Below, one piece after another: positions 760-59,959 of a stretch of DNA of 64,000 bases (position 1 is its first letter; every line of letters begins with the position of its first letter). Below the pieces are notes generated by a model that was given only the letters and a program-made list of their open reading frames with translations, made no database searches and was not told the DNA's origin. The position numbers and the translations under genes were made by a program. The stretch is taken from NCBI RefSeq assembly GCF_052425735.1, contig NC_135762.1, positions 15,252,001-15,316,000 of the forward strand, given 5' to 3'. This DNA is from Oculina patagonica. Its lineage: Eukaryota.

Positions 760-1125
760 TTAAGTTCCTGAAATTCGATTGTCATTTACAATATTTCTTG
801 GTGTAGAACGTATTTTGCCCGCAAACCATCCGCTTGAGGCCATCCCCTCTATGACTTGTCTATCGTCGGACGCTGCAGCAGGTTGAGCGGAATCTGGCTC
901 GCTCTCCACAATTAATTTTCCACTCTGCAGGTCAAACACTAGTCTTTCTTTCCCTTTACTTCCTTCTCCACCTCTTGCAATAACTTTAAGTCGACTTGCA
1001 ACCACCTCTGACTTCAATACTTGTGTACTACCGTCTTCCGCTTTTGTTTCTTCATCTTTCTGTATTACAAAGTGAAAGTCAAATTCTCTTGCGGCCTGTT
1101 GGTTGCTTTTCTCTGTTTGGTCCAT
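760..1125 (-). CDS. Small 'FF-tail' family protein P1 (121 aa, divergent member)
   Basis: ATG at 1125 (MDQTEK...). Contains ERLVFDLQSGKLIV...DRQVIEGMASSGWF, which aligns by eye with the LVFxPxTGKL...GFF core of the neighbouring paralogs. Intronless. Confidence 0.7.
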   Translation of the reverse strand: MDQTEKSNQQAAREFDFHFVIQKDEETKAEDGSTQVLKSEVVASRLKVIARGGEGSKGKERLVFDLQSGKLIVESEPDSAQPAAASDDRQVIEGMASSGWFAGKIRSTPRNIVNDNRISGT

Positions 1126-1638: not shown

Positions 1639-1878
1639 ATGTCTTCTAACCCGCAACGCATTCAAGAACACCTCGAGAACAGAGGAGGCAGCTCTGAAGC
1701 GCTGGTGTTTGATCCTGCCACAGGAAAGTTGATGGTGAAGCCACAACGAGAAGCCCAAAATTCCGCCGACAGGACCGTCATGTTGGACATGAACAAGAGT
1801 GGATCTGGAGGATTCTTCAACTTCGGCGCTTGCGACTGGCGACAGACAAGTGATAGAGACTATGTTCTGAATTTATGA
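1639..1878 (+). CDS. Small 'FF-tail' family protein P2 (79 aa)
   Basis: ATG at 1639: MSSNPQRIQEHLENRGGSSEALVFDPATGKLMV...DRTVMLDMNKSGSGGFFNFG...; clear similarity to P3-P5. Confidence 0.8.
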   Translation: MSSNPQRIQEHLENRGGSSEALVFDPATGKLMVKPQREAQNSADRTVMLDMNKSGSGGFFNFGACDWRQTSDRDYVLNL

Positions 1879-2975: not shown

Positions 2976-4268
2976 TTATTTCCCTGGAGACGAGAAAAAT
3001 TCGACATTTTCTGCAGTGGCCTCCATATCTTGGCATGTCTTGCAGTCAGATTTTCTTTCGCTCATCATTGGATACCACCTAAGAATTCCAGGCTTGTCGA
3101 ACCTATGAAAGCCGTCTGGTGGGTATCCAGCGTACTGCTGCTCTCTGCGGTTGGCCCACATGTAATAGGGAGCCACCAGATCCTTCTCCAACGGCGCCAG
3201 TGCGCTGTCCTTACCTCGGCACAGCTCTACCAGGGCTAACTTCACCAGCATGTTGCCAATGGGAATGATGTCAGACGAAAGCCCAACCTGAATCGTGGCC
3301 GTCACTTCGTCGTCTCCAACATAAGGAGGATTAGCCTCGCGAGCTTGACGGAAGGAAGACATCTCTTCCGCGCTGGCTTCCATCGCCGCATCAGCGTAGA
3401 TGCACGAGAAGCATGGGCCATCTTTTGGTCTAACTCGCAGCACTTCTCCCCCTGCAGCTCTAACGGCGCACTTTCCGTAGAAGGTGGGGATGCCCAGCTC
3501 TATGGACAATGTGTTGATGTTGAGTCTGCTTCTTATGTTATCGGTCGCAGCCATGATAACGTCGCATCCTTTGAGAATTCTTCTGGCGTCGTCTAAATTG
3601 TTGATGTTGGTGTTGTGAATCTCTACCTCAGCAAATGGGTTCTTGTCTAGGATGCGGTCTCGCATAACATTCGTCTTCAGACGCCCTAGATCGCTTAGCC
3701 CACAAATATGGCGGATGATGTTATGCAGCTCAATCCGATCGAAGTCGACCAATACAAACTTGCCAACTCCGGCCTTGGCCAGCTCTATTGCTACGTGGGA
3801 GCCGCCACTTCCAAGCCCAACCACTGCAACTTTTCGCTCCTCCAACAGACTCGACTCGAGTATGCCATGACTGCGTGAGTAAAGCTGGGATCTTCGTGGT
3901 TGGCGCAGGACAGCCGCTTGCTCTATGGGTTCAGTTGACTTCGGCCGCACACAAACTCTGACATGGTCGTCTTCAGAAACCAGGATTGCAATTTGTGGCT
4001 CATCGAGGGGTGGGAGATTGGATATTAGAGTAGAGGCAATTTTCAGAACCTCTGTACACGGAGGTAGCTCTTTAAAGACCTTGAAAACGACTCGCTTTTC
4101 TGGTTTACCCGGAGCGGCGCTGTATTTAACCCGGACGTGGATTGTGTCACAGTCGTCAAACGCTGTCACGGAAAAGCGTTTCTCACCGGCTTCTTCGTTT
4201 TTGAGGACATCAGTAAAATTAGGTTGCAAGAAACAAACAACTTTACGATTGTCTTCTTCTTCGCCCAT
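2976..4268 (-). CDS. ThiF/MoeB/E1-like adenylyltransferase (430 aa) with an unassigned N-terminal ~125-aa domain
   Basis: Arg-finger LYSR, Rossmann VAVVGLGSGG, DFDRIELHNIIRH, GRLK, ATDN and two Zn-binding CxxC pairs (CFSC, CKTC). Intronless. Confidence 0.92.
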   Translation of the reverse strand: MGEEEDNRKVVCFLQPNFTDVLKNEEAGEKRFSVTAFDDCDTIHVRVKYSAAPGKPEKRVVFKVFKELPPCTEVLKIASTLISNLPPLDEPQIAILVSEDDHVRVCVRPKSTEPIEQAAVLRQPRRSQLYSRSHGILESSLLEERKVAVVGLGSGGSHVAIELAKAGVGKFVLVDFDRIELHNIIRHICGLSDLGRLKTNVMRDRILDKNPFAEVEIHNTNINNLDDARRILKGCDVIMAATDNIRSRLNINTLSIELGIPTFYGKCAVRAAGGEVLRVRPKDGPCFSCIYADAAMEASAEEMSSFRQAREANPPYVGDDEVTATIQVGLSSDIIPIGNMLVKLALVELCRGKDSALAPLEKDLVAPYYMWANRREQQYAGYPPDGFHRFDKPGILRWYPMMSERKSDCKTCQDMEATAENVEFFSSPGK

Positions 4269-4315
4269 CGTATTTAGTTCCTGGTTCTTCTGATCGAACT
4301 AAAATCACAAATGTT

Positions 4316-4746
4316 GAAATTGAAATAAATCGATACCATCATTCTTAGAATTTCCATCCATCTTTTGATTGGATAATTTCGTTTCGGTGACGAAACTGCA
4401 ATAAATATAAGCCTCTTTTTCCTGGAATTTTATTGCCTGTTGAGATGCTAAACAACAGATCAAATTATACAGCTGATGTCAATCTGGTGTTTAGCGTTTT
4501 CAAAGACACAAGAAGCAAGAACGCGCTCACCTTAAAATTGTTTATTTGATGATCTGTTTAGCTTGCCTTCTTGTTACATACTATAAAACAGATCACAGTT
4601 TACTGATAGCACTGAAATTAAAATCATCTTGTTACGGATCAAAAATTATTTATTGGAAACTGAAATAGAAAATGAAACAAGGGAAAACACCGTCCCGTCA
4701 CGCTACAGCAGCTGTGAGTCGGAATGTCTTCCGCTTATTCTGAGAA
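4316..4746. promoter_or_regulatory. GAS/ISRE-like cluster upstream of the E1-like gene
   Basis: GAAATTGAAA 4316-4325, TTCTTAGAA 4342-4350, TTTCGTTTC 4377-4385, TTCCTGGAA 4419-4427, GGAAACTGAAA 4655-4665, TTCTGAGAA 4738-4746. Confidence 0.5.
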
Positions 4747-6060
4747 TTCCTTCTGTACTGATTGAGCATGCTCCAGTTTGTACGTTTGTACGTGGACTCT
4801 GGGAACGAGATTGCGTTTGTATATATGCTGAAATCTGGTGTTACGATACTTGGATAACGGCAATGAACTACAGTATTTTACAAAACTTGAATTATTACTT
4901 GTTGCTCAAAAACTGTTTCAAAGTTGCATTCAACAGTACGAATTATAAATTGCATTCGACAGTTATTTTCTTCTACTTGAAATGCTCAACATTACCTAGA
5001 ATGCTTTGTCCCCGAAGGTGTCGAGGACAGAGCTGAATTGATGGATTTATAACGAGCATGCACCCTTGCCGCTTGATTATGAACACATAAATTATTGCAA
5101 TCAACAAGGACGCGAGATGTGTCACAGCATTTAAATGGTGAGCCCCTCTCGGAGGTTTTTAGGGTACAAGGGAAAATGGCCTTGAAGAATTGGGAACACG
5201 GGAACAAAACCTGTCTTTCTGATAATTTTGAAAACCGGGATCTGAAAAATCGGCAAAATACTTCTAAGGAACAATACATCACAAGGGAATATCTTTGGGG
5301 AACGTTCGTCGGCTAGCTTCATTTCCAACGACATCAAAAAAATTGTCAACGTAGAATGAAACGGGCAGTTACAAAGACTCTTTCCTGGTTTATTGTGATA
5401 GTGCATCCAATCTGAAAAAGGTTGAAAAACTTAACTAAAAAACTTAACCCTTTCAAGTAACGTTTATCTCTAATTTGAAATAACAAGAAGCCACTCAATG
5501 ATTATGGTCTGCAATCAATACGCAGTAGTGATTTCCCAAGGACATTCATCTTAACAGCTAAGCATAACATCACTGTGGGAATGAAAAAGAAATAAGAAAA
5601 TGTTAAAAACGCACTGTTTTAAGAGACTCCTGTTTCAGGAAACACCCTGCATGTACGCATAATTTGACACGCTTTTCTAGCTACATTACAAGATTAATTG
5701 CTTACAAGAGGTTAATTTCCAAGAAAATCGATCAGGAAGTAATTGTAAAAAGTCTTTCTGACATGACCCTGGCAACAGCAGAACACATCAACAACAGAGG
5801 GTAGCAACGGGTTGGAACTGCAATGATAGACAGCTTAATTTTACAGAGTTCTTGTGAAATATAAAATATTCGCTCGACAAGTTTCTTGGTGGTAGTATTG
5901 AAAGTGGAGGTTCAAAGTTGTACTACAGTACGAGTTCCCGGACTGTGTTGTCCGAGTGTCCATCGAGTCCAAACACTTTAGCTTTTAAAAAATTTAGTAC
6001 AAGCTAATGTTCCAGAGTTACTTTGCCTCAGACGATCCCTGTGATCTCAGCTTGTCACGT

Positions 6061-6270
6061 TCAGCACACGCAAACGAAAAATCCTCCTCCATCACGCTTG
6101 TTCATAGCTGTGACAACCTCTCGTCCTGGCCTGATTCGAGCCTGTACTTTGTTCATTACCTCAAGCTTCCCGGTTTCAGGGTTAAAGACCAATGCTTCTT
6201 GTCGACTACCGCCACTTTCAAAAAAATTGGTTACTGCACCCTGCCTAGGACGGGATGGAGCTGAACCCAT
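6061..6270 (-). CDS. Small 'FF-tail' family protein P3 (69 aa, MGSAPS N-myristoylation motif)
   Basis: MGSAPS...EALVFNPETGKLEV...REVVTAMNKRDGGGFFVCVC*. Confidence 0.8.
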   Translation of the reverse strand: MGSAPSRPRQGAVTNFFESGGSRQEALVFNPETGKLEVMNKVQARIRPGREVVTAMNKRDGGGFFVCVC

Positions 6271-6810
6271 GCTTCAATTCAGGACGTCATCAACCGTGGT
6301 CAAAGTAATACATAGGTGATGTTTGCATTGGTATAGCCGTTTATCGAAGTTTGTTTTATGCATATTTACCGCATGTATAATTTGAATTGACACTTATTTG
6401 CTTAAACGAGGTCATTTTCTGAGAAAATCAGGAAGACCTCTTAAAGCGTCTAAATCCGACAAGAGCTACTGAAAAGATTTCAACAGCAAGAAATGGAAAC
6501 CTTGAAATATTAGATCATATCAAACCATATTGATTCACGTCACTAATAAAATGTTTCAATATAAACACTCCCAGGAAAAAAACTAAAATCTCTATGTACA
6601 GTTGTTGTCTTTTTTTTTTCAAAATTCTTGCATAACACTCACCGGACACAAATGCAAGTTAACGCACACGGTTTATCGCCTATATGCTTTAAAGAAAGTT
6701 AGATATTGTGCGTTTTAAACAAAGGTGAACACTGAAAATCTCATTCAAATGTACTTTTGGTACGTCAATCTCCGTGTTTCATCTAACACGAATAGCGGAA
6801 TTGCTGAAAA

Positions 6811-7107
6811 TTATCTTACAAAGAATCCTCCACTTCCAGGTTTGTTTACGTCCAAGACGACGTGACGACCTGGCCTCGTATCTTCCTTTCTTACTATTTC
6901 AAGTCTTCCTGAGGCCGAATTGAAGACCATCTCTTCCATTGCATTGCCACCATTTTCAAAAAACCTTTCCATCTTAGTAGGCTGTTCCTGGGGAGTAGCC
7001 GGGTACGACGAACCTGCTCTTGGTTCTTTTGGGATCTCCGGGGCAATCCGTGGACTTGGTTGAATGATCCTACTCGGAGGTCTTGAAACTGATGAACATG
7101 AACCCAT
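6811..7107 (-). CDS. Small 'FF-tail' family protein P4 (98 aa, MGSCSS start)
   Basis: MGSCSS, Pro-rich linker, EEMVFNSASGRLEI...RHVVLDVNKPGSGGFFVR*. Confidence 0.8.
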   Translation of the reverse strand: MGSCSSVSRPPSRIIQPSPRIAPEIPKEPRAGSSYPATPQEQPTKMERFFENGGNAMEEMVFNSASGRLEIVRKEDTRPGRHVVLDVNKPGSGGFFVR

Positions 7108-8056: not shown

Positions 8057-8278
8057 TCAGCTTGTCATGTTCAGGACAAAGCGAAAGAATCCCCCTCCGT
8101 CAGGACTGTTCATAGCTGTGACAACCTCTCGTCCTGGCCTGCCATGAGCCTCTGCTTTGTTCGTTACCTCCAGCTTTCCAGTTTCTGAATTAAAGACCAG
8201 CTCTTCTTTTCGATTACCGCCACTTTCCAGAAATTTTGCTACTTCACTTGGTCTCGGACGTGATGGAGCGGAACCCAT
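8057..8278 (-). CDS. Small 'FF-tail' family protein P5 (73 aa, paralog of P3)
   Basis: MGSAPS...EELVFNSETGKLEV...AMNSPDGGGFFRFVLNMTS*. Flanks are homologous to the P3 flanks. Confidence 0.8.
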   Translation of the reverse strand: MGSAPSRPRPSEVAKFLESGGNRKEELVFNSETGKLEVTNKAEAHGRPGREVVTAMNSPDGGGFFRFVLNMTS

Positions 8279-8498: not shown

Positions 8499-10352
8499 TA
8501 GATTACTTCATGGAAAGTGCGCGCGTACGGTGTTTACGCACGAGTTGTTGACGTATCAGAAATCGAACGAACAACAAAATCGTTGAAAAAAGACATTTCA
8601 TGAGATTATTCTCGTGTCTTAAAATTGTTCTAATTGGATAAGAAATCGAATATCAAGAGTTTTTTACTCAACAAGTACAAGAATGAAATATAGAAATAAG
8701 AACTAAGAATACGTAACCGTGCTATTGCAAGGGAGGGCTATCTTCATCCGAAGAATCTAAAATACGTTTAACACGCTTGAAGGTGTGCTTTCTTGTTGCT
8801 GAGTACGCATTAGGCGACTGACTTACTGTGTTTATAGAAATGTTAAAGTGTCCTCCATGAAACACGGCTCCGCTAAATACACTTGCTCCAGGCAATGTTG
8901 GACTGCTTGACGACTGAAAACTACAAGACAGAGTTTCAGCTTCACTCTCTGTAGCCAATGCTCGATGAACTTTTGCAGAAGATTCAGTCGAGGTCGCACT
9001 CAGTAGCCTTGACATTTTTTTTTTTGCTGTTGTTGGGAAATGTGGCTATAATTGTTAATGCTTTGGACATTTTTGTGGCCTGGGAGCTGCATAATGTGAC
9101 TGGGAGGTATATCGCTGTCGTTTAGTTTTTGTACCATGCGTTTTCGAGCGCTGTGATAAGTCAGTCGTTTACTTGAAAGGCCTCCTTTTTCCGCCATGGT
9201 TTTCATCAGACTATTCAATTTGTTCTGACCCATTGCACTTGATTTAAACCACAGTTTTTTCGACGAAGGACTTTTTGTGTAATTTATTCCGAGATAGAAT
9301 GGCGCATCAGGTTTATACATCGCGTCAGGTCTCTTTTCGGAATAAATTTTGTAAACGGCAACTGGATCTCTTTCAGGTGGACCGTTTGGTGCTGCAAAAG
9401 CCTTCGGTTTAACAGCTCTGACATTTCGAGGTTCAGCTCCCGTTCTAGTTTTCGTTTGACGTTCAGAATACTCTAGGTATTCAGTCCGTCGGCTTCCATG
9501 TGAAGTTCCACGTCGCCCCAAGTCATCTGCCGATGTTCTTCACAGCCTCTCAAACCAAAATGCACTGAATTGAAAAGCCAGAGTGTGTTTAGCAAAGCTT
9601 CGGCATTTGAGATTCCCAGTAAATTCTTTTCGAAAAGAATGTTTTCCTCCACATCAGTCAAAGCTTCGGCTGCGTTGGGTTTGTTCCCTTTGCCTTCTTT
9701 TTTCAGTTGTTTGCTGCGAGCTTCCAGACATTTTCTTGCTTGATCAAACACAGTGTCTTCGATAATACTCGCTGAGTACTTGCGTTATCTTAAATACCGG
9801 TTAAAACTTGAGAACAACCCTCGAAGGCTCGATGGTTCATAGTCTTGACCATCTTTTCTTTTCACACTAAGAATGAATTCACTAAGGTAACGCCTGAGCT
9901 CCTCTGGTTGGATGTCTTCAATTTTTCTTTGTTCGTTTTTCTCCAGCAGAAATGTAGAAAGCAGATTCACATCCCGCTGCGTTTTCGCTCGAGTGTTTTT
10001 GTTTTCCTGCTCTGTAATATATTCTTCGATGGGTTTACTTAATGGTTTAAACCTACTGCCAGAAGATTCAGCCATAGTTGTTAATGAGAACGTTTTAAAC
10101 CGTCCACAAATGTACTGCGAAAGGCCAAAAAATTTCAAGCAGTGAGAAAGCTAGCGCCATCGACAAAGCTACCACGTTTGCTCCACGTTCATTGGAAATG
10201 TTGATGCGTTTTGACAGCCGCTTTCTGATTGGACGAAACGGGTTTCTCACGTGTAAGAAAGTCGTTTCGCGGTTGTCATTGGCTGCGAGAATTTCCGAAC
10301 CGTGTTTTTAACAGATCAATTCTAACTGTAAATCTCAGTATGTATGAAATAA
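8499..10352 (-). mobile_element. Crypton-type tyrosine-recombinase DNA transposon with a disrupted ORF (~8722-10075)
   Basis: Split ORFs carry tyrosine-recombinase motifs HFGLRGCEEH, YHSARK and PGHKNVQSINNY. The block is absent at the equivalent point of the paralogous units (~6520 and ~12430), which gives approximate ends. Confidence 0.8.
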
Positions 10353-10608: not shown

Positions 10609-10791
10609 TCAAAGGTATAGCAGAATTGGGAAATATTGTCTGAAAAAGAATCCTCCACTTCCAGGTTTGTTTACGTCCAAGACGACGTGACGACCTGGCC
10701 TCGTATCTTCCTTTCTTACTATTTCAAGTCTTCCTGAGGCCGAATTGAAGACCATCTCTTCCATTGCATTGCCACCACTTTCAATAATAAC

Positions 10792-10837
<46 letters not shown>

Positions 10838-11080
10838 TAATAATAATAATAATAATAAAAAAATAATAACTGTTTTATTGGAAGAGCTTCCACATAGTGG
10901 CTCTTCGTCTTCCAAATAAACTAAATTTACAAAAAGCCTTTCCATCTTAGTAGGCTGTGTCTGGGGAGTATCCGGGTACGACGAACCTGCTCTTGGTTCT
11001 TTTGGGATCTCCGGGGCAATCCGTGGACTTGGTTGAATGATCCTTCTCAGAGGTCTTGAAATTGATGAACATGAACCCAT
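10609..11080 (-). pseudogene. P6: copy of P4 disrupted by a ~150-bp insertion
   Basis: Near-identical to P4 on both sides of an insertion at ~10783-10930. The 5' half is MGSCSS...KMERLF and the 3' half is ESGGNAMEEMVFN...GGFFFRQ. Confidence 0.8.
10783..10930 (-). mobile_element. Short retroelement 3'-end with (TTA)n tail
   Basis: On the minus strand AATAAA is followed by a long (TTA)n tract; the block is absent from P4. Confidence 0.55.
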
Positions 11081-12051: not shown

Positions 12052-12254
12052 TCACCGTCGAAAGAAGCCAGAGCCAGTGTCTGATCCACTTGGGTTTGAT
12101 ATGATTTTCACTTTCGTTGTGTTTCTATAGGCTTCTCATCTGGTCATAACCTCCAGGTTTTTGGATTAAAGACCAATGCTTCTTGTCGACTACCGCCACT
12201 TTCAATAAAGTTAGTTACTGCACTCTGCCTCTGATGTGTTGGAACTGAACCCAT
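12052..12254 (-). pseudogene. P7: chimeric FF-tail pseudogene (P3-type 5' half, P8-type 3' half)
   Basis: Reads MGSVPTHQRQSAVTNFIESGGSRQEALVFNPKT, then a frameshift, then LEVMTR*EAYRNTTKVKIISNPSGSDTGSGFFRR*. Not in the ORF track. Confidence 0.8.
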
Positions 12255-14686: not shown

Positions 14687-15364
14687 TTACATCAGTACGC
14701 AACAAGAGCTTCTGTTAGGGTGATAAACCATTAAGGGTCGCTCGATCTCTCTAGTGTCTTTCCGAGTTGATTTTTGAAGTATTTCTTGTAGAGAAGCTAT
14801 ATCTCCATTCGTGTTAATACACTCTGCTCCATCTTCAAAAATCTTAAGACATTTTGAACGAAAAGGACTTTCATTCGACAGGAGGTTAAATCTTCCTTGT
14901 ACCATCTCGCGCTTTGTTCCAGTCTCTTCAAACAGAAAGCATCCAACACTTACGGCGACTTCTCCATAGTCATCCGTTTCAATGTTGGCAATAAACAAGA
15001 GAAAGCGACTCAAGCCATATTTTGGCATGTTTGTCCACACTGTTCGTTGATCCCCGCCACTTGGTTGTCTAAGACCGATTCTGTGGTGGGAATGCCACTC
15101 GCCAATGTGGCAAACGCCTTCCTTGCCAGTCAAAATGGAGCCAACTTTCTCTAAGTACTCCACGTCTTGGTAAAAAGAGTGGGTAGTCCTTTTACAATTT
15201 TTACCAGGACCCAATACAAGTTGTATTACTGCACTATGATCGTCGGACCACAGACCGAACAAATCTCCGCCGGTCTCCAGGCTTTGGTTCTTTATAACAC
15301 AGGCGCACATTTGCTTGTACTCACTGGCATAGATAGCGACTGTAAATTCTCTATCTGTGGACAT
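14687..15364 (-). CDS. JAB/MPN+ (JAMM) metalloprotease 1, prokaryotic-JAB-like, C-terminal CaaX (CVLM)
   Basis: ETGGDLFG (catalytic Glu) and HIGEWHSHHRIGLRQPSGGD (HxH-x7-S-x2-D JAMM motif). Intronless; ends SSCCVLM*. Confidence 0.9.
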   Translation of the reverse strand: MSTDREFTVAIYASEYKQMCACVIKNQSLETGGDLFGLWSDDHSAVIQLVLGPGKNCKRTTHSFYQDVEYLEKVGSILTGKEGVCHIGEWHSHHRIGLRQPSGGDQRTVWTNMPKYGLSRFLLFIANIETDDYGEVAVSVGCFLFEETGTKREMVQGRFNLLSNESPFRSKCLKIFEDGAECINTNGDIASLQEILQKSTRKDTREIERPLMVYHPNRSSCCVLM

Positions 15365-15746
15365 GAGGAGATAATAAGAAGACCCATTTTTTTACGTCAG
15401 ATAAATTAAAGAGGAAAGTCTTGTTTCATTTTTGCAACTGAGAACCAATTTTAAAAAGGGGTTTGCGGAAATTGCTCATGGAACGTGTACGTAAACAAAG
15501 AAAATCTTTTTGGCAATTTGCATCTCATTTGGTGTTAACTTGGCGTGACAAGCCTGGTTTCTCAAAACAGTCATTAAATGAAAGAATGTCAAACACAAAT
15601 CCATGTCAAGCTTCCTTATAGCCAATCCTCCAAAGCATGGAAAGATAAATAGCTCGCAACAAAGGTAACAGAAAATATATATAGGTTTCAAACAAAAAAA
15701 AAAGGTTTATTTTTCATGAGTCAGTGATGTAAATAAGACACTAAAA

Positions 15747-15773
15747 GGTCATTTTCTGAGAAATTTAGGAAGT
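15747..15773. promoter_or_regulatory. Shared GGTCATTTTCTGAGAAA (GAS) plus AGGAAG (ETS-like) module
   Basis: The same 17-mer occurs at ~6410, ~8389 and 16721, with a one-mismatch copy at ~12368. It lies upstream of JAB1 and of P3, P5 and P7. Confidence 0.55.
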
Positions 15774-17001
15774 CTTTTCTGGTCAGTCAAACACGACAAC
15801 CAGAAAAAAACAACAGGACAACAACAGAGTATCGACTCAGTTTTGACATTTAATGTTATTAAAGTTTTAGACTAGTTCAGTATTATTCTTCTCTGAGTTA
15901 CATAGCTTCGAATACATATCTTAATGTCCAATGAACTTGGTAAATATAGATTACAGAGTACTAAACGCTGTGATTTATGTCCTAAAACTAATACTGTATT
16001 TATTCGAAGTTTAAATAAGTGCATAAATATATAGTATTGTTTCCAGAGTTATCGAAACACTGGGAGTAGTTTAATTTGGGAGATCTACTACTCGAATAAG
16101 CTGGGAACTCGAACCATAGCCGAACGATATAGTTTGCTTGTTTGCCTTTTTAATCACTGCGCTTTTCCTGCTTCTCAACATGCACATTTACTAGTCAGTA
16201 ACATCATAATTCGTTTAAAACTCGAAAAAAGATTGTATAATAATTTCTAAAGTAAAAGGCTTGGATCGATATATAAAGTTCGCATACAGTTGCGATCTCT
16301 GTAAAAATATTTACACGTACATAGATTTTGTCCATTTTGACAAGGTCCCTCAGTAAAGATCATATCAGATTCTTATGAGACACGCTTAAGTGAATAAAAG
16401 CTAAGTTAAAAAATTAACCTACGATCGCTTCAAGAGAATTTTTGTTAGTTGTCACTCTATCTCCTCTCCTCTCTTAATATGTTGCACCGGCTTTACATTC
16501 ACTTTTGTGAATCCTTATAGTTCCTTGAGTACATCGCTATTAAAACGAGTAGAGGAGAAGAAAAGATCATTAATTGTTAGCTTTTTCAAAACCTCTTTAT
16601 CCTGATAGTACACCCTAATTTTGGATTTTTAGCACATATTTCTATCAGGTTTCCAAGACGTTTCCGCCGAATAAGTTCAACAATTTGCATAACAGGATTT
16701 AAGTCAACCCCCTAAAAGGAGGTCATTTTCTGAGAAAACTAAAAAGTCGCTAAACAATGCATGCATTGGCAACGGTGTGATAGCCTCAAATTTGTTTCAG
16801 TGCATTCTACACGAATTTATTTTTGCTATAAATATTCTTTACTTCTTTTGTTTTCGTTTTCATCGTTTTGCCATCTAACGGTTTGGCAACTCTGCTCTGT
16901 CAGCTAGATGTATCTGTAGGTCGACAGTCGCTCATTCAAGCTCTGTTCCTGTACAAGTCGATTATATATTTGTAAGATTGATTGGCTAAAACTACGATTC
17001 T

Positions 17002-17808
17002 TTAAAGTATTTCACAAACGGGGCAGCGCTTTCTTATTTCATAAACAATTCGAAACAGCCTACCCCCTTCATTTTCACTCGTAGCCCCTTGCTCCGGGTC
17101 GTGTTTGCGACGCTTCTTCGGTTTAATATCCACCACAGCTTCTTCTTTATGTTTGGGTGGCCTCCTCCGATTATCACTCATCACAGGTCGCTCGCTCAGC
17201 ATAGACGTCCCTGTTGTTACTTCCAAAGACTTCACGTCTTCATCCCTGTTCAGACACTCTGCTCCTTTTTGTAAAACGCTCAGGCATTTTGGACGGAAGG
17301 GGCTTTCATTCGGCAAGAGGTGGAACTTTCCTTGCAACACTTGTAACTTCTGGTTGGTTCCCTTTACAAATTCAAACAGAAAGCATCCAACGCTAACAGC
17401 TTCGCATCCATAACTTTGTGTCTCAATGTTGGCAATAAACAAAAGAAAACGGCTTAAGCCATATTTAGGCATGTTTGTCCACACTGTTCGTTCATCTCCG
17501 CCACTTGGTCGCTTAAGACCGATTCTGTGGTGGGAATGCCACTCGCCTATATGGCAAACACCTTCCTTGCCTGTCAAATTGGAGCCAGCTTTCTCTAGGT
17601 ACTCCACGTCTTGGTAGAACGAGTGGGTTGCTCGCTGACAGTTTTTACCAGGACCCAATACAAGCTGAATTACTGCCCTACGATCGTCAGACCACAAACC
17701 GAACAAATCTCCGCCGGTTTCCAGGCTTTGGTTCTTCAAGACCCAGGCACATATTTCTTTGTATTCGTTGGCATAAATAGCCACTGTAAATTCCCTTTTT
17801 GTCGACAT
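17002..17808 (-). CDS. JAB/MPN+ (JAMM) metalloprotease 2, C-terminal polybasic region and CaaX (CEIL)
   Basis: Close paralog of JAB1 with ETGGDLFG and GEWHSHHRIGLKRPSGGD. Tail includes KPKKRRK and ends RKRCPVCEIL*. Confidence 0.9.
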   Translation of the reverse strand: MSTKREFTVAIYANEYKEICAWVLKNQSLETGGDLFGLWSDDRRAVIQLVLGPGKNCQRATHSFYQDVEYLEKAGSNLTGKEGVCHIGEWHSHHRIGLKRPSGGDERTVWTNMPKYGLSRFLLFIANIETQSYGCEAVSVGCFLFEFVKGTNQKLQVLQGKFHLLPNESPFRPKCLSVLQKGAECLNRDEDVKSLEVTTGTSMLSERPVMSDNRRRPPKHKEEAVVDIKPKKRRKHDPEQGATSENEGGRLFRIVYEIRKRCPVCEIL

Positions 17809-19181: not shown

Positions 19182-19727
19182 TCACCGTCGAAAGAAGCTA
19201 GAGCTGTCTGATCCACTTGGGTTCGTTATAATTTTTACCTTCGTCGTGTTTCTATAGGCTTCTCGTCTGGTCATTACCTCCATTTTTCCTGTTGAAAGGA
19301 CCATAACTAAGACAAAGCCTGGATATCGCTCAGGATCTTTCGAGAACTCGCTCACTGACGGTTGACGGTAACTATGGGACGCAACGTTTCGAGTGGGGCC
19401 GTCGTTTAACTTTCGAGAAGAGTCTACGTTGTAGCTTCTAGGAGATGCTGTATTCAAGTCTCGAGGAGGGACAGTGTTAAAGTTTAGATCGGGAACGGCA
19501 TTTAAGTTTCCATTTGGGACTGAGGTGAAGTTTCCAGGAGGCATGGGGAAAAGGTTTCCGTGTGGAGGAGCGTAAAGGTTCCCTGGCCATGGAGGAAAGG
19601 CGGCTAAGTTTGCAGGATGGACAGGATTGAAGCCTCCAGATGGTACAATGATGAAGTTTCCATAAGGGTCGAACATAAAGTTTCCATAAGGTGTAGCGAT
19701 TATGGGTCCAGAAGGGACAGTCCCCAT
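19182..19727 (-). CDS. FF-tail family protein P8 (181 aa) with N-terminal Pro/Gly/Asn octapeptide repeats
   Basis: MGTVPS start, about 12 degenerate PxGN[FL]xxx repeats, then FVLVMVLSTGKMEVMTRREA...KIITNPSGSDSSSFFRR*. Confidence 0.75.
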   Translation of the reverse strand: MGTVPSGPIIATPYGNFMFDPYGNFIIVPSGGFNPVHPANLAAFPPWPGNLYAPPHGNLFPMPPGNFTSVPNGNLNAVPDLNFNTVPPRDLNTASPRSYNVDSSRKLNDGPTRNVASHSYRQPSVSEFSKDPERYPGFVLVMVLSTGKMEVMTRREAYRNTTKVKIITNPSGSDSSSFFRR

Positions 19728-20441: not shown

Positions 20442-21714
20442 TCACACATTTTGAATAGTATGGCGATTAATGTTTATGTTCACGTTTGAGAAAATCCTTC
20501 CGCATGACTCATAAATGGGATCATAAAAGCACTTCACAAAAAATAGCCAGACTTTCCCCATCAGCCCTAATGGAATCAACCAGAGACGGACGAAAGGTGT
20601 AAACACCCAAATCATTAAGAAGCTCATTATCCCACATGTCAGACCATAAAGAAAGGACAGGAGGCCGCCAAATACAATCGTCAGAATCGAGTATGTCCCC
20701 AGGACAGTGCCATCGTAGATGGTTTTAGTGAAGTGGTGAGAACATTGTGGACTGTGGACTGCTGATGGTTCGCAGATTACATCTGAGTAGGCGACCTAAA
20801 AGAAGAAAAATCAAATTGATGGAAATAAACAAAGAGAAATGGGTTTCATAAACCTTATGATGTTATATCATCATCATCATCATCATCATCATCATTTTTT
20901 CTACGAAAAGTTTATGTAATTAGGTGTTATGTGTCAGTTTCTTGTCATTATGTTAGCTTTACAATAGATGATCTAAGAGCTTAACGTCACGGAACTTTCA
21001 TTACATGTTTATATTGATGAATTTTATACAAGCGATCCTTTGGTATATGCCTGTACTTGTAAGTGCGATTCTCGATAAGGGTAATGGATGAATCGATTGA
21101 CTAAACTCATTAAACATATTTAATTTGATTATATTAAAGTAGGTATTTGTTGTTTCATTTTTGTTACGCCACACTTCATTTTTGGTGGATTATGTTAATT
21201 TGACGTTCCCAGGTTTTGTCTTGAATAAATTAATTTGAGCTAATTTGCTTTAAAGCGAGAAAATATCCCTTTTCTGCGCCCTACTACCAAACCGAAACCA
21301 CCACTGGCGTATTTATAGGTCAACTAATTTTTGTGTAAAGAGTGACTATTTATATTCAGCAATGTCAGTGGTGATGTGTACGACATCGTAACAAATCACA
21401 GGACAAAACTGTCAAAGCGACGTATGTTCGCTGTCAAGGTACATGAGTAAATATTAGTGTACTGCAAAAAAAGATATAATTTTACCGAATTAACGTATAG
21501 TTACCATCGGAGAACTGTTCGGGCACTTATCAACAAGAATCAACAAGAGATAGTAGCATAAATTGTAACTATAACGCAGACGAAGCATCATACGGTGCAC
21601 TGACTATATTCTGAATACACTGAATATATCGTTCATCGTTTGTACCTTCAGAAAAGCGTTATGATTTTGTGGATCCCTGTCCTCGAAATCCGTTAGTATC
21701 GGCTGCCTGTCCAT
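20442..21714 (-). CDS. Caveolin family protein A (2 exons: 21714-21646 and 20795-20442; 140 aa)
   Basis: Spliced product MDRQPILTDFEDRDPQNHNAFLK|VAYSDVICEPSAVHS... matches the caveolin RDP..N...K..FEDVIAEP signature. Long hydrophobic hairpin and C-terminal DPxYESCGRIFSNV. GT/AG phase-0 intron. Confidence 0.88.
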
Positions 21715-22769: not shown

Positions 22770-23219
22770 ATGAGTTGGAGTTCGCAGCAACGAACAAGAC
22801 TCGGGTTGGAGAAAGATATTTTAGACAGCAAGTTAAAGAACGTGTCGTGGATTAATCCCACATCGGCTGGAAACACCCGAGTCGAATGGCGAGTGAACAC
22901 AAACAACGACAACAGCTACACGCTTCGTGTCTACCTCTCGGCGAATTTTCCAAATGAATGCCCGATACTGGTTGTAAGCTCTCCTTCATCTCCTCTGAGG
23001 AAAAAGAATGGATCTCTTCTCGACAGTACGGACGGGAGTGATCATGTTTATGGAAGCATCGATGGCTTGACACAAATTTGCCACTTCAATAAAAGCAAGT
23101 GGACGAGCGAAAATACCGTCTACCAAGTCCTTATGAAAGGGCGCATCTGGCTGGAAGCTTACGAAATTCATCGGCGTACTGGGGAATATCTGGAGAAATA
23201 TCTGGCGCACATGCAGTGA
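22770..23219 (+). CDS. Divergent E2/UBC-fold conjugating enzyme (149 aa)
   Basis: N-terminal helix RLGLEKDIL, LRVYLSANFPNECPILVV (FPxxxP), HVYGSIDGLTQICH (Cys at the UBC active-site position) and WTSENTVYQVL (conserved Trp). Intronless. Confidence 0.8.
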   Translation: MSWSSQQRTRLGLEKDILDSKLKNVSWINPTSAGNTRVEWRVNTNNDNSYTLRVYLSANFPNECPILVVSSPSSPLRKKNGSLLDSTDGSDHVYGSIDGLTQICHFNKSKWTSENTVYQVLMKGRIWLEAYEIHRRTGEYLEKYLAHMQ

Positions 23220-25011: not shown

Positions 25012-25618
25012 TCATCGTCTAAAGAAGCTAGAACTGCCTGATCTGGATTAACTTGGGGTCGAAACAATTTTCACTTTGTTTGCATTTCTCTGAGCTTCTC
25101 GTCTGCTCATGACCTCCATCTTTACCATAGAAAGGATCATAACTAAGACAAAGCCCGGGTATTGCTTGGGATTTTTAGAAAACTCCTTCACTGATGGATA
25201 GGAGTGCTTCTGGGACACAGCGTTAACGTTTCGAGAAGGGGCCGCGTTTAAGTTTCGTCGAGGGGTGGCATTCAATTTTCGAGGAGGGTCAACGTTGTTG
25301 TTTCGTGGAGGGCTGAGGTTATACCTTCTAGAAGGGACAACGTTAATGTTACCAGGAAATACGGCGTTTACTATAAAGTTTTGTTGAGAGATCGAGATAA
25401 AGCTATTCCAGGAGCCACGCCGTCAGGGTTTCCTAGAGGCGCGGGGAAGACGTTTTCAAGAGGAACGGCGAAGCTGTTCACAGGAGGAACGGCAGTGAAG
25501 TTTTCGGGTGCCGCGACTTTCAAGCTTTCAAGAGGGTGACAGCAAAGTGTCCACATGGATGGGCGAAATAGTTTCCAGAAGGAACGGCGATAAAGTTACC
25601 GGACGGGACGGCCCACAT
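25012..25618 (-). pseudogene. P9: degenerate paralog of P8
   Basis: Starts MWAVPSGNFIAVPSGN (Gly2 lost), has frameshifts in the repeat region and ends KVKIVSTPS*SRSGSSSFFRR* with a premature TAA at 25048-25050. Confidence 0.75.
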
Positions 25619-26780: not shown

Positions 26781-27212
26781 CTAGCCGAGCCAGATTAGTC
26801 CTTCCCTCTGATATCGATGGCGATCCGCTTTATTGCAGATTCCAAGTTGTCCACTTGTAACGTCGAAATATAAAAGCCTTTCGGTTGAACTTCCTTGCAA
26901 ATATTCCAAGATCGTGTCTTCGTTAGACGTTTGCCGGAAGAACCCAGAGTTATCTGAACGGTCGGATTCACTTGAACTAGAAACGATTTTAACCTGTGCC
27001 CCGCTAGTGCGCGCTTCTAGTCTAGTCATAATCTCCATTTTTCCCGTAGCAAGGACCAAGACCAACACGAAGCCGGGATAACGATCTGGGTTGTTTGAGA
27101 ACTCGCTTACGGATGGACGGCTGCTCCGTTGAGAAGTTCTACTGTTTTGAGGACGAACGACTTCGGCGTTTAAATGTCGAGGAACGCGGCGTGTACTTTC
27201 TTCTGCCCCCAT
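26781..27212 (-). CDS. FF-tail family protein P10 (143 aa) with two tandem core domains
   Basis: ATG at 27212 (MGAEES). Core 1 is FVLVLVLATGKMEI...SDNSGFFRQ; core 2 is TILEYLQGSSTERLLYFDVTSGQLGI.... Confidence 0.7.
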   Translation of the reverse strand: MGAEESTRRVPRHLNAEVVRPQNSRTSQRSSRPSVSEFSNNPDRYPGFVLVLVLATGKMEIMTRLEARTSGAQVKIVSSSSESDRSDNSGFFRQTSNEDTILEYLQGSSTERLLYFDVTSGQLGICNKADRHRYQREGLIWLG

Positions 27213-58855: not shown

Positions 58856-59424
58856 TATTAAACTAACAATAAGTCGGCACATAACAGTGACATCATCGCA
58901 AAGGTAAATAAATTTTTCTTGATCACCAACAATCGTCATTCAACTCGACAGACGACCTAACTCTGCTTGAACTACTAGAAGTTTCCATGTAGCTTGTGGG
59001 TATCCATCCATAAATTTACAAAAAAAAAAACGTTTATTCCTACAATCTATGATCTTTTGACTATCTAAAGTGCAGATAGTTTACAAATAGATTGGATTCC
59101 AAAATCCAACTTTAAGATTAATATTACAAGAGTTGATGTTCGCGGGAGAAAATATGTCTCAGTGGCCCACTCCGGCAAGGGCTAAAATGTTCTCCAAAAA
59201 CATATTAAAGAGCCAAAAACATATTTGCATATTTATTTTATAATAATTCCAAAAAAAAAAATTAGTATGGGTAATCAAATGGTGACGAGTGAAATTAGGA
59301 AATAATTTCACGCGCATTTTGTCAAAATTCTAATAATTTCCCGAGCCTTTAGGCGAGGGAAATTATAAGAATTTTGACAAATTGCAAGTGAAATTATTTC
59401 CTAATTTCACGAGTATAACATTTG

Positions 59425-59924
59425 NNNNNNNNNNNNNNNNNNNNNNNNNNNNNNNNNNNNNNNNNNNNNNNNNNNNNNNNNNNNNNNNNNNNNNNNNNNN
59501 NNNNNNNNNNNNNNNNNNNNNNNNNNNNNNNNNNNNNNNNNNNNNNNNNNNNNNNNNNNNNNNNNNNNNNNNNNNNNNNNNNNNNNNNNNNNNNNNNNNN
59601 NNNNNNNNNNNNNNNNNNNNNNNNNNNNNNNNNNNNNNNNNNNNNNNNNNNNNNNNNNNNNNNNNNNNNNNNNNNNNNNNNNNNNNNNNNNNNNNNNNNN
59701 NNNNNNNNNNNNNNNNNNNNNNNNNNNNNNNNNNNNNNNNNNNNNNNNNNNNNNNNNNNNNNNNNNNNNNNNNNNNNNNNNNNNNNNNNNNNNNNNNNNN
59801 NNNNNNNNNNNNNNNNNNNNNNNNNNNNNNNNNNNNNNNNNNNNNNNNNNNNNNNNNNNNNNNNNNNNNNNNNNNNNNNNNNNNNNNNNNNNNNNNNNNN
59901 NNNNNNNNNNNNNNNNNNNNNNNN
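59425..59924. other. Assembly gap (500 N), true size probably near zero
   Basis: Joining the flanks gives CATTTG+ATTAC, which completes the inverted repeat of GTAATCAAATG at 59271. Confidence 0.8.
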
Positions 59925-59959
59925 ATTACTAGTTCGATATTATCACGCGAATGATAAAC

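Follow-up and report, generated by a model that had tools for sequence, protein, structure and literature searches.

The stretch analyzed here, a window of 64,000 nucleotides on contig NC_135762.1 of the coral Oculina patagonica (NCBI RefSeq assembly GCF_052425735.1, positions 15,252,001 to 15,316,000), has a G+C content of approximately 39% and few long open reading frames (ORFs), as expected of an animal genome. On its minus strand it carries two paralogous genes, JAB1 and JAB2, that encode predicted JAMM/MPN+ metallopeptidases whose C-termini end in CaaX boxes. The two coding sequences and the parts of their C-terminal ends are located as follows:

14687-15364, minus strand: JAB1, JAMM/MPN+ metallopeptidase of the Prok-JAB (Cap3-like) type, a single ORF of 225 amino acids
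14690-14704, minus strand: CaaX box of JAB1 with adjacent Cys, Cys-Cys-Val-Leu-Met; X is Met (farnesyltransferase type) and the adjacent Cys is a candidate palmitoylation site
14705-14743, minus strand: short tail of JAB1, lying between the ERPLM landmark and the Cys-Cys box (sequence comparison)
17002-17808, minus strand: JAB2, paralogue of JAB1 with a longer tail, an intact ORF of 268 amino acids
17005-17034, minus strand: terminal R-K-R-C-P-V-C-E-I-L of JAB2, with a CaaX box in which X is Leu (geranylgeranyltransferase-I type), a Cys at -7 and basic residues
17035-17193, minus strand: tail of JAB2 from the ERPVM landmark, consisting of a low-confidence linker and a predicted helix (residues 248-261) that reaches into the last ten residues (AlphaFold2)

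A sequence-only reading of this locus had stated that both peptidases terminate in CaaX boxes, each accompanied by a second membrane signal, on tails that are otherwise unrelated. The ends were as described: before their stop codons, JAB1 terminates in ...PNRSSCCVLM (CaaX codons 14690-14701) and JAB2 in ...RKRCPVCEIL (CaaX codons 17005-17016), with R-K-R located just upstream of the Cys at -7. Both CVLM and CEIL have a Cys at position -4, an aliphatic residue at a2 and an X residue that fits farnesylation (M/S/Q/A) or geranylgeranylation (L/F). JAB1 and JAB2 shared 73% identity across their first ~212 residues, after which the tails diverged. To call the tails unrelated was an overstatement, since both contain an (E)RP[LV]M landmark, behind which the JAB2 type has additional inserted sequence. 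At the DNA level, positions 14802-15364 and 17237-17808 were 81% identical, from the ATG through the common coding part, and JAB1 has an ATG of its own, followed by a start (M-S-T-x-R-E-F) that it shares with JAB2. Comparison of the flanks of the two loci showed no similarity, and the likeness was confined to coding sequence.

The JAMM motif (Glu30, H91-x-H93 and S102-x-x-D105) was complete in JAB1 and JAB2, and its residues showed complete invariance or a conservation of at least 90% across an alignment of 83 sequences. Matches to the Pfam family Prok-JAB (PF14464; gathering cutoff 25 bits) were weak, with scores of 25.4 bits for JAB2 and 20.9 bits for JAB1. PADLOC models for JAB proteins of the type found in CBASS (anti-phage systems that signal through cyclic oligonucleotides) matched the two JABs with E-values of 1e-16 and 2e-15 (for JAB1, PDLC00890, E 1.2e-16). 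A search of the PDB with a single sequence yielded only a marginal match to Cap3 (PDB 9ild, E 0.034) and a PDB search with an 83-sequence profile of the coral family yielded none, so that a comparison of folds was needed. The AlphaFold2 model of JAB2 had a predicted local distance difference test score (pLDDT) of 85 overall and above 90 in the core. Residues 205-247 were modeled with low confidence (pLDDT ~50 for 225-247) and residues 248-267 were predicted to be helical (pLDDT 60-70), which places the CaaX box behind a low-confidence linker, in a moderately confident helical end. Foldseek comparison of this model with the PDB gave 242 matches at E ≤ 0.001 (top matches: E ~3e-9, template modeling score ~0.48). 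The best 50 of these 242 were all MPN/JAMM-domain proteins, catalytic or pseudo-enzymes (BRCC36, Rpn11, CSN5/CSN6, AMSH, Cap3, archaeal JAMM1 and Npl4).

Ratios of nonsynonymous to synonymous substitution (dN/dS) in the core, calculated against orthologues, were 0.2 for JAB1 and 0.05 for JAB2, while those of the tails were 0.4-0.55, at a synonymous divergence above 1. These values indicated that the JAB core is under purifying selection and that the tail is relaxed overall, with its end fixed. As judged from motif, predicted fold and selection, JAB1 and JAB2 are functional paralogous genes that encode what appear to be catalytically intact JAMM metallopeptidases.

A pattern of four residues is short, and the simplest rival explanation of the two boxes is chance, in which two Cys-rich ORF ends happen to fit it. 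Stop-to-stop ORFs of at least 50 amino acids in the window were used as a background set for the frequency of C-terminal motifs. A Cys at -4 was found in 4.8% of these ORFs and a lenient version of the CaaX pattern in 1.6%, corresponding to a chance expectation of ~2.5e-4 for two independent lenient hits. Against this background, the motif pair alone is suggestive rather than decisive, and conservation in homologues is the decisive sequence evidence. A homologue search with JAB2 yielded 640 relatives, of which the 120 closest were covered by the counts of C-termini given below. Most of the homologues came from metagenome assemblies and the named members were Oculina, Pocillopora and Porites; breadth beyond Scleractinia is uncertain. 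Within this order, we take Oculina and Pocillopora on the one hand and Porites on the other to represent the two major lineages.

Of the 120 closest homologues, 66 had a Cys at -4, the conservation of which the sequence-only reading had proposed to check, and a full CaaX box according to the rules for a2 and X was found in 63. The full box was most frequent among the nearest relatives: in order of closeness, the first 40 homologues included 34 with the box, the second 40 included 24 and the third 40 included 5. Among the 66 sequences with a Cys at -4, a2 was occupied by L/V/M/I in 61, and X was Leu in 40 and Met in 16. The listed homologues contained 24 distinct CaaX tetrapeptides, which excludes that one sequence was copied many times. 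Tail length after a conserved ESPF landmark varied from 51 to 251 residues, in some cases with internal repeats, and the box was still terminal. This census, with the pattern in 63 of 120 homologues, its many tetrapeptides and a synonymous divergence above 1, refuted a chance origin, to which we assign a negligible probability. Instead, the CaaX box is almost certainly a selected feature of these proteins, as far as can be read from their sequences.

Homologues with the two main X residues differed in the signal that accompanies the box. In the X = Met class (JAB1 type, ~215-230 amino acids), a Cys directly adjacent to the box was present in 15 of 16 sequences. In the X = Leu class (JAB2 type, ~250-280 amino acids), 32 of 40 sequences had a further Cys placed three residues upstream to give CxxC spacing, and the 10 residues before the box contained on average approximately three Lys or Arg residues. 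By the rules of prenylation, the CC-a-a-M class reads as farnesyl plus palmitoyl, and the basic CxxC-a-a-L class as geranylgeranyl combined with a polybasic stretch and a further Cys. The second signal that had been claimed for each box was thus not only present in both JABs, but also conserved and class-specific in the homologues. The tail of JAB2 additionally contains a basic cluster, K-P-K-K-R-R-K-H (17101-17124, minus strand), that resembles a nuclear localization signal; a comparable cluster was found in 18 of 39 homologues with X = Leu vs. 4 of 16 with X = Met. Together with the CaaX box, this cluster could point to the nuclear envelope as the site of JAB2.

Several observations weigh against prenylation of these ends. 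In four cluster representatives, two Cys residues are located near the C-terminus but the last Cys lies 6-7 residues from the end instead of 4, and three of these four retain CPxC spacing; the terminal Cys pair may have a role apart from, or beyond, prenylation. Furthermore, a1 of the JAB2 box is Glu, a rare residue at this position (2 of 66 homologues). Finally, an NCBI gene model (KAL9972645.1 / XP_078372151.1, 470 amino acids, on contig CM126639.1 of GCA_052425735.1) joins JAB2 residues 1 to ~248, through ...SENEG, to JAB1 from residue 4, and thereby omits the JAB2 box.

The first of these observations is what would be expected if the two terminal Cys residues, spaced as CxxC in proteins of the JAB2 type and as CC in those of the JAB1 type, formed a metal-binding, redox or purely S-acylated motif that resembles CaaX incidentally and is not prenylated. 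CxxC is a common zinc half-site, and the last 20 residues of JAB2 were predicted to be helical rather than extended. However, a metal site demands neither a last Cys exactly four residues from the stop, as retained in 66 of 120 homologues despite the large variation in tail length, nor an aliphatic a2 (61 of 66) and an X that is almost only L or M. Moreover, the JAB1 type has no CxxC, and the hydrophobic tail anchors and poly-Cys ends of distant clades, described below, point to membranes, not metals. A metal-binding, redox or purely S-acylated motif is therefore considered unlikely, and it is likely, on the strength of the conserved signals, that the box is actually prenylated and targets the peptidases to membranes.

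If the deposited 470-amino-acid model were right, JAB2 and JAB1 would be exons of one tandem two-JAB gene, the CaaX tail of JAB2 would be intronic and the JAB1 box alone would stand at a protein end. The model uses a GT after its last JAB2 codon and an AG before the entry point into JAB1, and multi-JAB proteins do occur among the family representatives. However, dozens of homologues conserve both the stop position and the approximately 20 codons that come after the proposed donor, as would not be expected of intron sequence, and the GT is located within a conserved Gly codon and the AG within conserved coding sequence. JAB1, in addition, retains its own ATG and the JAB2-like start. Because the skipped codons and stop position are conserved, JAB1 has kept its own start and the splice signals lie within conserved codons, the model was judged to be a merge made by the gene predictor. 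Such merges are common at this cluster, as illustrated by a model of 997 amino acids in which four neighboring genes of Pocillopora are fused. A genuine two-JAB gene is, in our estimate, very unlikely, and its product would still terminate in the CaaX box of JAB1. An AATAAA lies about 180 nt downstream of the end of the JAB2 ORF (17002-17062). Four short Logan contigs with homologues (L001, L011, L012 and L013) contained no poly(A) run and were uninformative on mRNA ends.

A tree of JAB cores, which was rough (neighbor-joining on BLOSUM distances, without support values), placed JAB1, JAB2 and other coral CaaX proteins in one clade. The shared (E)RP[LV]M landmark in the tails and this single CaaX clade indicated that the box was inherited and not gained twice, and independent, convergent gain of the two boxes was rejected. 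In the simplest reading, the CaaX box would predate the duplication that gave rise to JAB1 and JAB2, and the linkers would have diverged afterwards.

The ends of other family members were in line with a membrane-related role. A separate clade elsewhere in the JAB tree terminates in Cys-Cys-x-Ile-Leu, and more distant eukaryotic members had tail-anchor-like hydrophobic ends (n = 9) or poly-Cys ends (n = 2). Lys/Arg-rich ends, which fit membrane or nuclear targeting alike, were found in 23 family members. Predicted membrane attachment by varied means is thus recurrent across the family and provides independent support for the functional reading. Homologues adjoin dynein exons, G protein-coupled receptor genes or caveolin genes in various species, and the dynein and receptor neighbors indicated that they are eukaryotic host genes. 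Many distant long members (P0171, P0173, P0175, P0180, P0183, P0186, P0189, P0194 and others) start with a short aromatic motif, M-x-W/F-..., and have Lys-rich tails, and several distant long members of the family carry two or three JAB domains.

In addition to the two peptidases, the window encodes homologues of ubiquitin-type E1 and E2 enzymes:

2976-4268, minus strand (the strand of the JABs): E1-like (ThiF) enzyme, 430 amino acids; ThiF E 1.4e-35, CBASS E1-E2 model PDLC00829 E 1.1e-31
22770-23219, plus strand: stand-alone E2-like protein, 149 amino acids; PADLOC E2 model PDLC00877 E 3.5e-6, weak RWD match

In a scan of bacterial and archaeal genomes, a compact JAB-E2-E1 operon was found in three metagenome-assembled genomes, assigned to Muribaculaceae, a proteobacterium and Anaerolineae. 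Amino acid identities between the coral proteins and those of the Muribaculaceae operon were 42% for JAB2, 33% for E2 and 44% for E1 (BLASTP E 2e-31, 3e-26 and 2e-87, respectively), and homologues of all three operon genes were clustered in the window as well as in two other coral contigs, L006 and L014. By sequence similarity and gene clustering, the coral JABs and the E1 and E2 of the window descend from a bacterial operon of the JAB-E2-E1 type. The bacterial JABs are longer (313-350 amino acids) and have a different C-terminal domain, which matched no known family; they lack both a Cys at -4 and a CaaX box. The view of the sequence-only reading that a eukaryote-specific anchor had been added to a prokaryote-type protease proved an accurate description, its prokaryotic part being borne out by the CBASS-type JAB models and the identity to the operon JAB.

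The bacterial operon (loci L008, 1941-6844, and L010, 3968-7491) adjoins a tyrosine integrase in one genome, that of Muribaculaceae, and a more distant HTH-JAB fusion, HTH denoting helix-turn-helix, lies at the end of a prophage, beside a terminase and a serine recombinase (L015, 393-6363). These neighbors indicated that the bacterial relatives ride on mobile elements. Mobile bacterial operons with E1, E2 and JAB genes are a general idea of earlier work (Iyer et al., 2006, PMC1779556; PMC3417536). No CD-NTase (nucleotidyltransferase resembling cGAS and DncV) was recognized among ORFs of at least 150 amino acids in the window, the spliced genes of which were not searched, or at the bacterial operon loci.

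Taken as a whole, the results are quite probably explained by JAMM peptidases of operon origin that are CaaX-lipidated and membrane-tethered. The bacterial C-terminal domain would have been replaced, in the coral lineage, by a fast-evolving and mostly disordered tail, of which the terminal CaaX box and a second membrane signal would be the only strictly kept features. Cytosolic farnesyltransferase would act on JAB1 (X = Met) and geranylgeranyltransferase-I on JAB2 (X = Leu), in both cases lipidating the Cys at -4, after which the last three residues would be cleaved off and the new end methylated. Palmitoylation of the adjacent or upstream Cys, together with the basic residues, would stabilize membrane binding and so position the peptidase on the cytosolic face of membranes, where its task may be the processing of precursors or the removal of what the E1/E2 pair has conjugated. 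Since the anchor types of JAB1 and JAB2 differ, the paralogues probably work at different membranes. Whereas motifs, conservation, catalytic site and fold, ancestry and selection were observed, it is lipidation, cell location and substrate that we infer.

The genes described above belong to a larger cluster, in which a JAB2-like gene, a JAB1-like gene, genes for small proteins and an E1 gene follow one another on one strand; this order was kept in other corals. It was the same in L014, an 11-kb contig of another assembly in which the boxes of the orthologues are CKIL and CVLM, and in Pocillopora meandrina, where the four genes that are merged into one predicted model of 997 amino acids are arranged in this way. 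The 3.3-Mb contig L006 showed the order JAB, JAB (box CIML), small protein, E2 and E1. The small proteins form a family, here termed the GFF family, with approximately 10 copies in the window (760-34267):

760-1125, minus strand: GFF-family protein beside E1, 121 amino acids, module ending in S-S-G-W-F-A; the same E1 neighbor occurs in the merged model of Pocillopora meandrina
1639-1878, plus strand: GFF-family protein, 79 amino acids (family comparison)
6061-6270, minus strand: GFF-family protein, 69 amino acids, starting with M-G-S-A-P-S; the L014 orthologue stops one residue after GGFF
6811-7107, minus strand: GFF-family protein starting with M-G-S-C-S-S, module ending in G-S-G-G-F-F plus two residues (family comparison)
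8057-8278, minus strand: GFF-family protein, 73 amino acids, starting with M-G-S-A-P-S (family comparison)
10639-11080, minus strand: GFF-family copy starting with M-G-S-C-S-S, with two similar segments split by a simple-repeat stretch
12055-12236, 25054-25618 and 34187-34267: further GFF-family copies (family comparison)
19182-19727, minus strand: protein of 181 amino acids directly upstream of JAB2, starting with M-G-T-V-P-S, whose N-terminal half is of low complexity and whose divergent GFF-type module ends in S-S-S-F-F-R-R
26781-27212, minus strand: protein of 143 amino acids starting with M-G-A-E-E-S, with a divergent GFF-type module

The family is defined by a module of ~45 residues that ends in G-[FW]-F, after which 2-20 variable residues precede the stop codon. 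Six of eight copies with a clear ATG start with M-G-x-x-x-S, a start that is usual for N-myristoylation, and a Cys at position 4 is also present in two of the six. One copy is broken by in-frame stops. No Pfam or PADLOC family matched the small proteins, and a word search gave only four homologues. The AlphaFold2 model of the protein encoded at 6811-7107 was poor (pLDDT 64) and showed one helix and one hairpin. Their identification as ubiquitin-like beta-grasp modifiers was therefore unsupported, as no family matched and the poor model is not a beta-grasp fold. A small gene of the GFF type was not seen in the bacterial JAB-E2-E1 operons. The small proteins are candidate partners of the JABs and, if they are, enzyme and partner would both be lipid-anchored.

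The NCBI model of E1 (536 amino acids, 2976-7107, minus strand) starts at 7107, which is the ATG of the M-G-S-C-S-S protein, so that this small protein, in which GGFF is followed by GTAAGA, is spliced onto the E1 ORF. The model represents either a predictor merge or a real fusion transcript of small protein and E1. A general splice donor after GGFF was rejected, since copies other than the one with GTAAGA lack a GT at this position.

Other genes and features were observed between or beside the members of the cluster. A gene for a caveolin-family protein of 140 amino acids (PF01146, NCBI annotation; ~20442-21714, minus strand), and thus for a membrane-domain protein within the cluster, is located between E2 and the 181-amino-acid M-G-T-V-P-S protein. 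At 9000-10138 on the minus strand, between small-protein genes, a mobile element of the Crypton-like kind is suggested by ORFs that carry DUF3504 and a tyrosine recombinase (phage-integrase) domain. A Myb/SANT (MADF-like) ORF (36322-36927, plus strand) and an ORF with weak similarity to HTH_Tnp_4 (40566-41264, minus strand) are probably transposon-derived. Runs of N, representing assembly gaps or masked sequence, were present at ~34990-35500 and 59420-59950.

A broader and much more tentative proposal is that the cluster in its entirety constitutes a conjugation pathway tethered to membranes, built by stony corals from a horizontally acquired JAB-E2-E1 operon. The small proteins, with their M-G-x-x-x-S/G-F-F architecture, would be its modifiers or substrates, and the two JABs would process or deconjugate them at two membranes. 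If true, this pathway would be a lipid-anchored counterpart of ubiquitin-like signaling and might serve in immunity, as is supposed of its bacterial relatives.

Bacterial E1/E2/JAB modules are known to accompany anti-phage systems as accessory components and are related to the ubiquitin machinery. The window contains one such module in an animal genome, where it is under selection in several coral lineages and has gained targeting signals of the eukaryotic kind. The conserved CaaX box of these JAMM peptidases predicts where this orphan pathway would act, namely at the cytosolic face of membranes. The locus further illustrates eukaryotization of a transferred prokaryotic enzyme, with a frozen core and a tail that evolves freely except for its last four or five residues, which are maintained. 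With CaaX boxes, hydrophobic tail anchors and poly-Cys tracts at the ends of its different clades, the family offers a natural series for the study of gained membrane targeting.

The sequence-only reading knew of no prenylated JAMM protease, in agreement with a full-text literature search, which yielded no report of such a protease or of this coral cluster and gave prenylated deubiquitinases of other folds only. The combination of a JAMM peptidase with a Ras/Rho-type anchor thus appears to be new, each component being known separately. As in the two-signal anchors of Ras and Rho proteins, a CaaX box is combined with either a palmitoylatable Cys or a polybasic stretch, and here both combinations occur, each tied to one X residue. 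The cargo, however, is a peptidase and not a GTPase, and the rules were applied from general knowledge.

With eukaryotic JAMM deubiquitinases (BRCC36, AMSH/Sst2, Rpn11 and CSN5), which were top Foldseek matches, the coral JABs have fold and zinc site in common, but sequence identity was only 11-19%. To our knowledge, BRCC36, AMSH, Rpn11 and CSN5 reach their sites via protein partners, not via a lipid anchor. The catalytic domain and motif are shared with bacterial JABs of the CBASS Cap3 type, which gave the best profile matches and, with Cap3 (PDB 9ild), were among the fold matches, whereas the coral proteins are animal host genes with a disordered tail and a CaaX box. In contrast to type II CBASS, coral E1 and E2 are separate proteins instead of a Cap2 E1-E2 fusion. 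Of the bacterial three-gene operon, a homologue of each gene is found, clustered, in coral.

Deconjugating enzymes with a C-terminal prenylation site are represented by the deubiquitinases Miy1 of yeast, human MINDY1 and USP32, which are brought to membranes by this site (PMC11847538; PMC10485055). These enzymes are cysteine proteases that act on ubiquitin, whereas the coral JAB is a metalloprotease that descends from bacteria. CaaX boxes that host enzymes lipidate are also borne by Legionella AnkB and similar effectors of bacteria (PMC5506055; PMC4322725), which, like the coral JABs, combine a prokaryotic-type protein with a eukaryotic CaaX box; these effectors, however, are injected by a bacterium, while the coral JAB gene resides in the animal genome. 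UBL3/MUB, a ubiquitin-fold protein, is tethered to membranes via prenylation (PMC10511055) and is thereby likewise a component of a ubiquitin-like pathway with a prenyl tether. In that case it is the modifier that is lipidated, whereas in the coral cluster it would be the peptidase and possibly, via a different lipid, the small proteins that start with MG.

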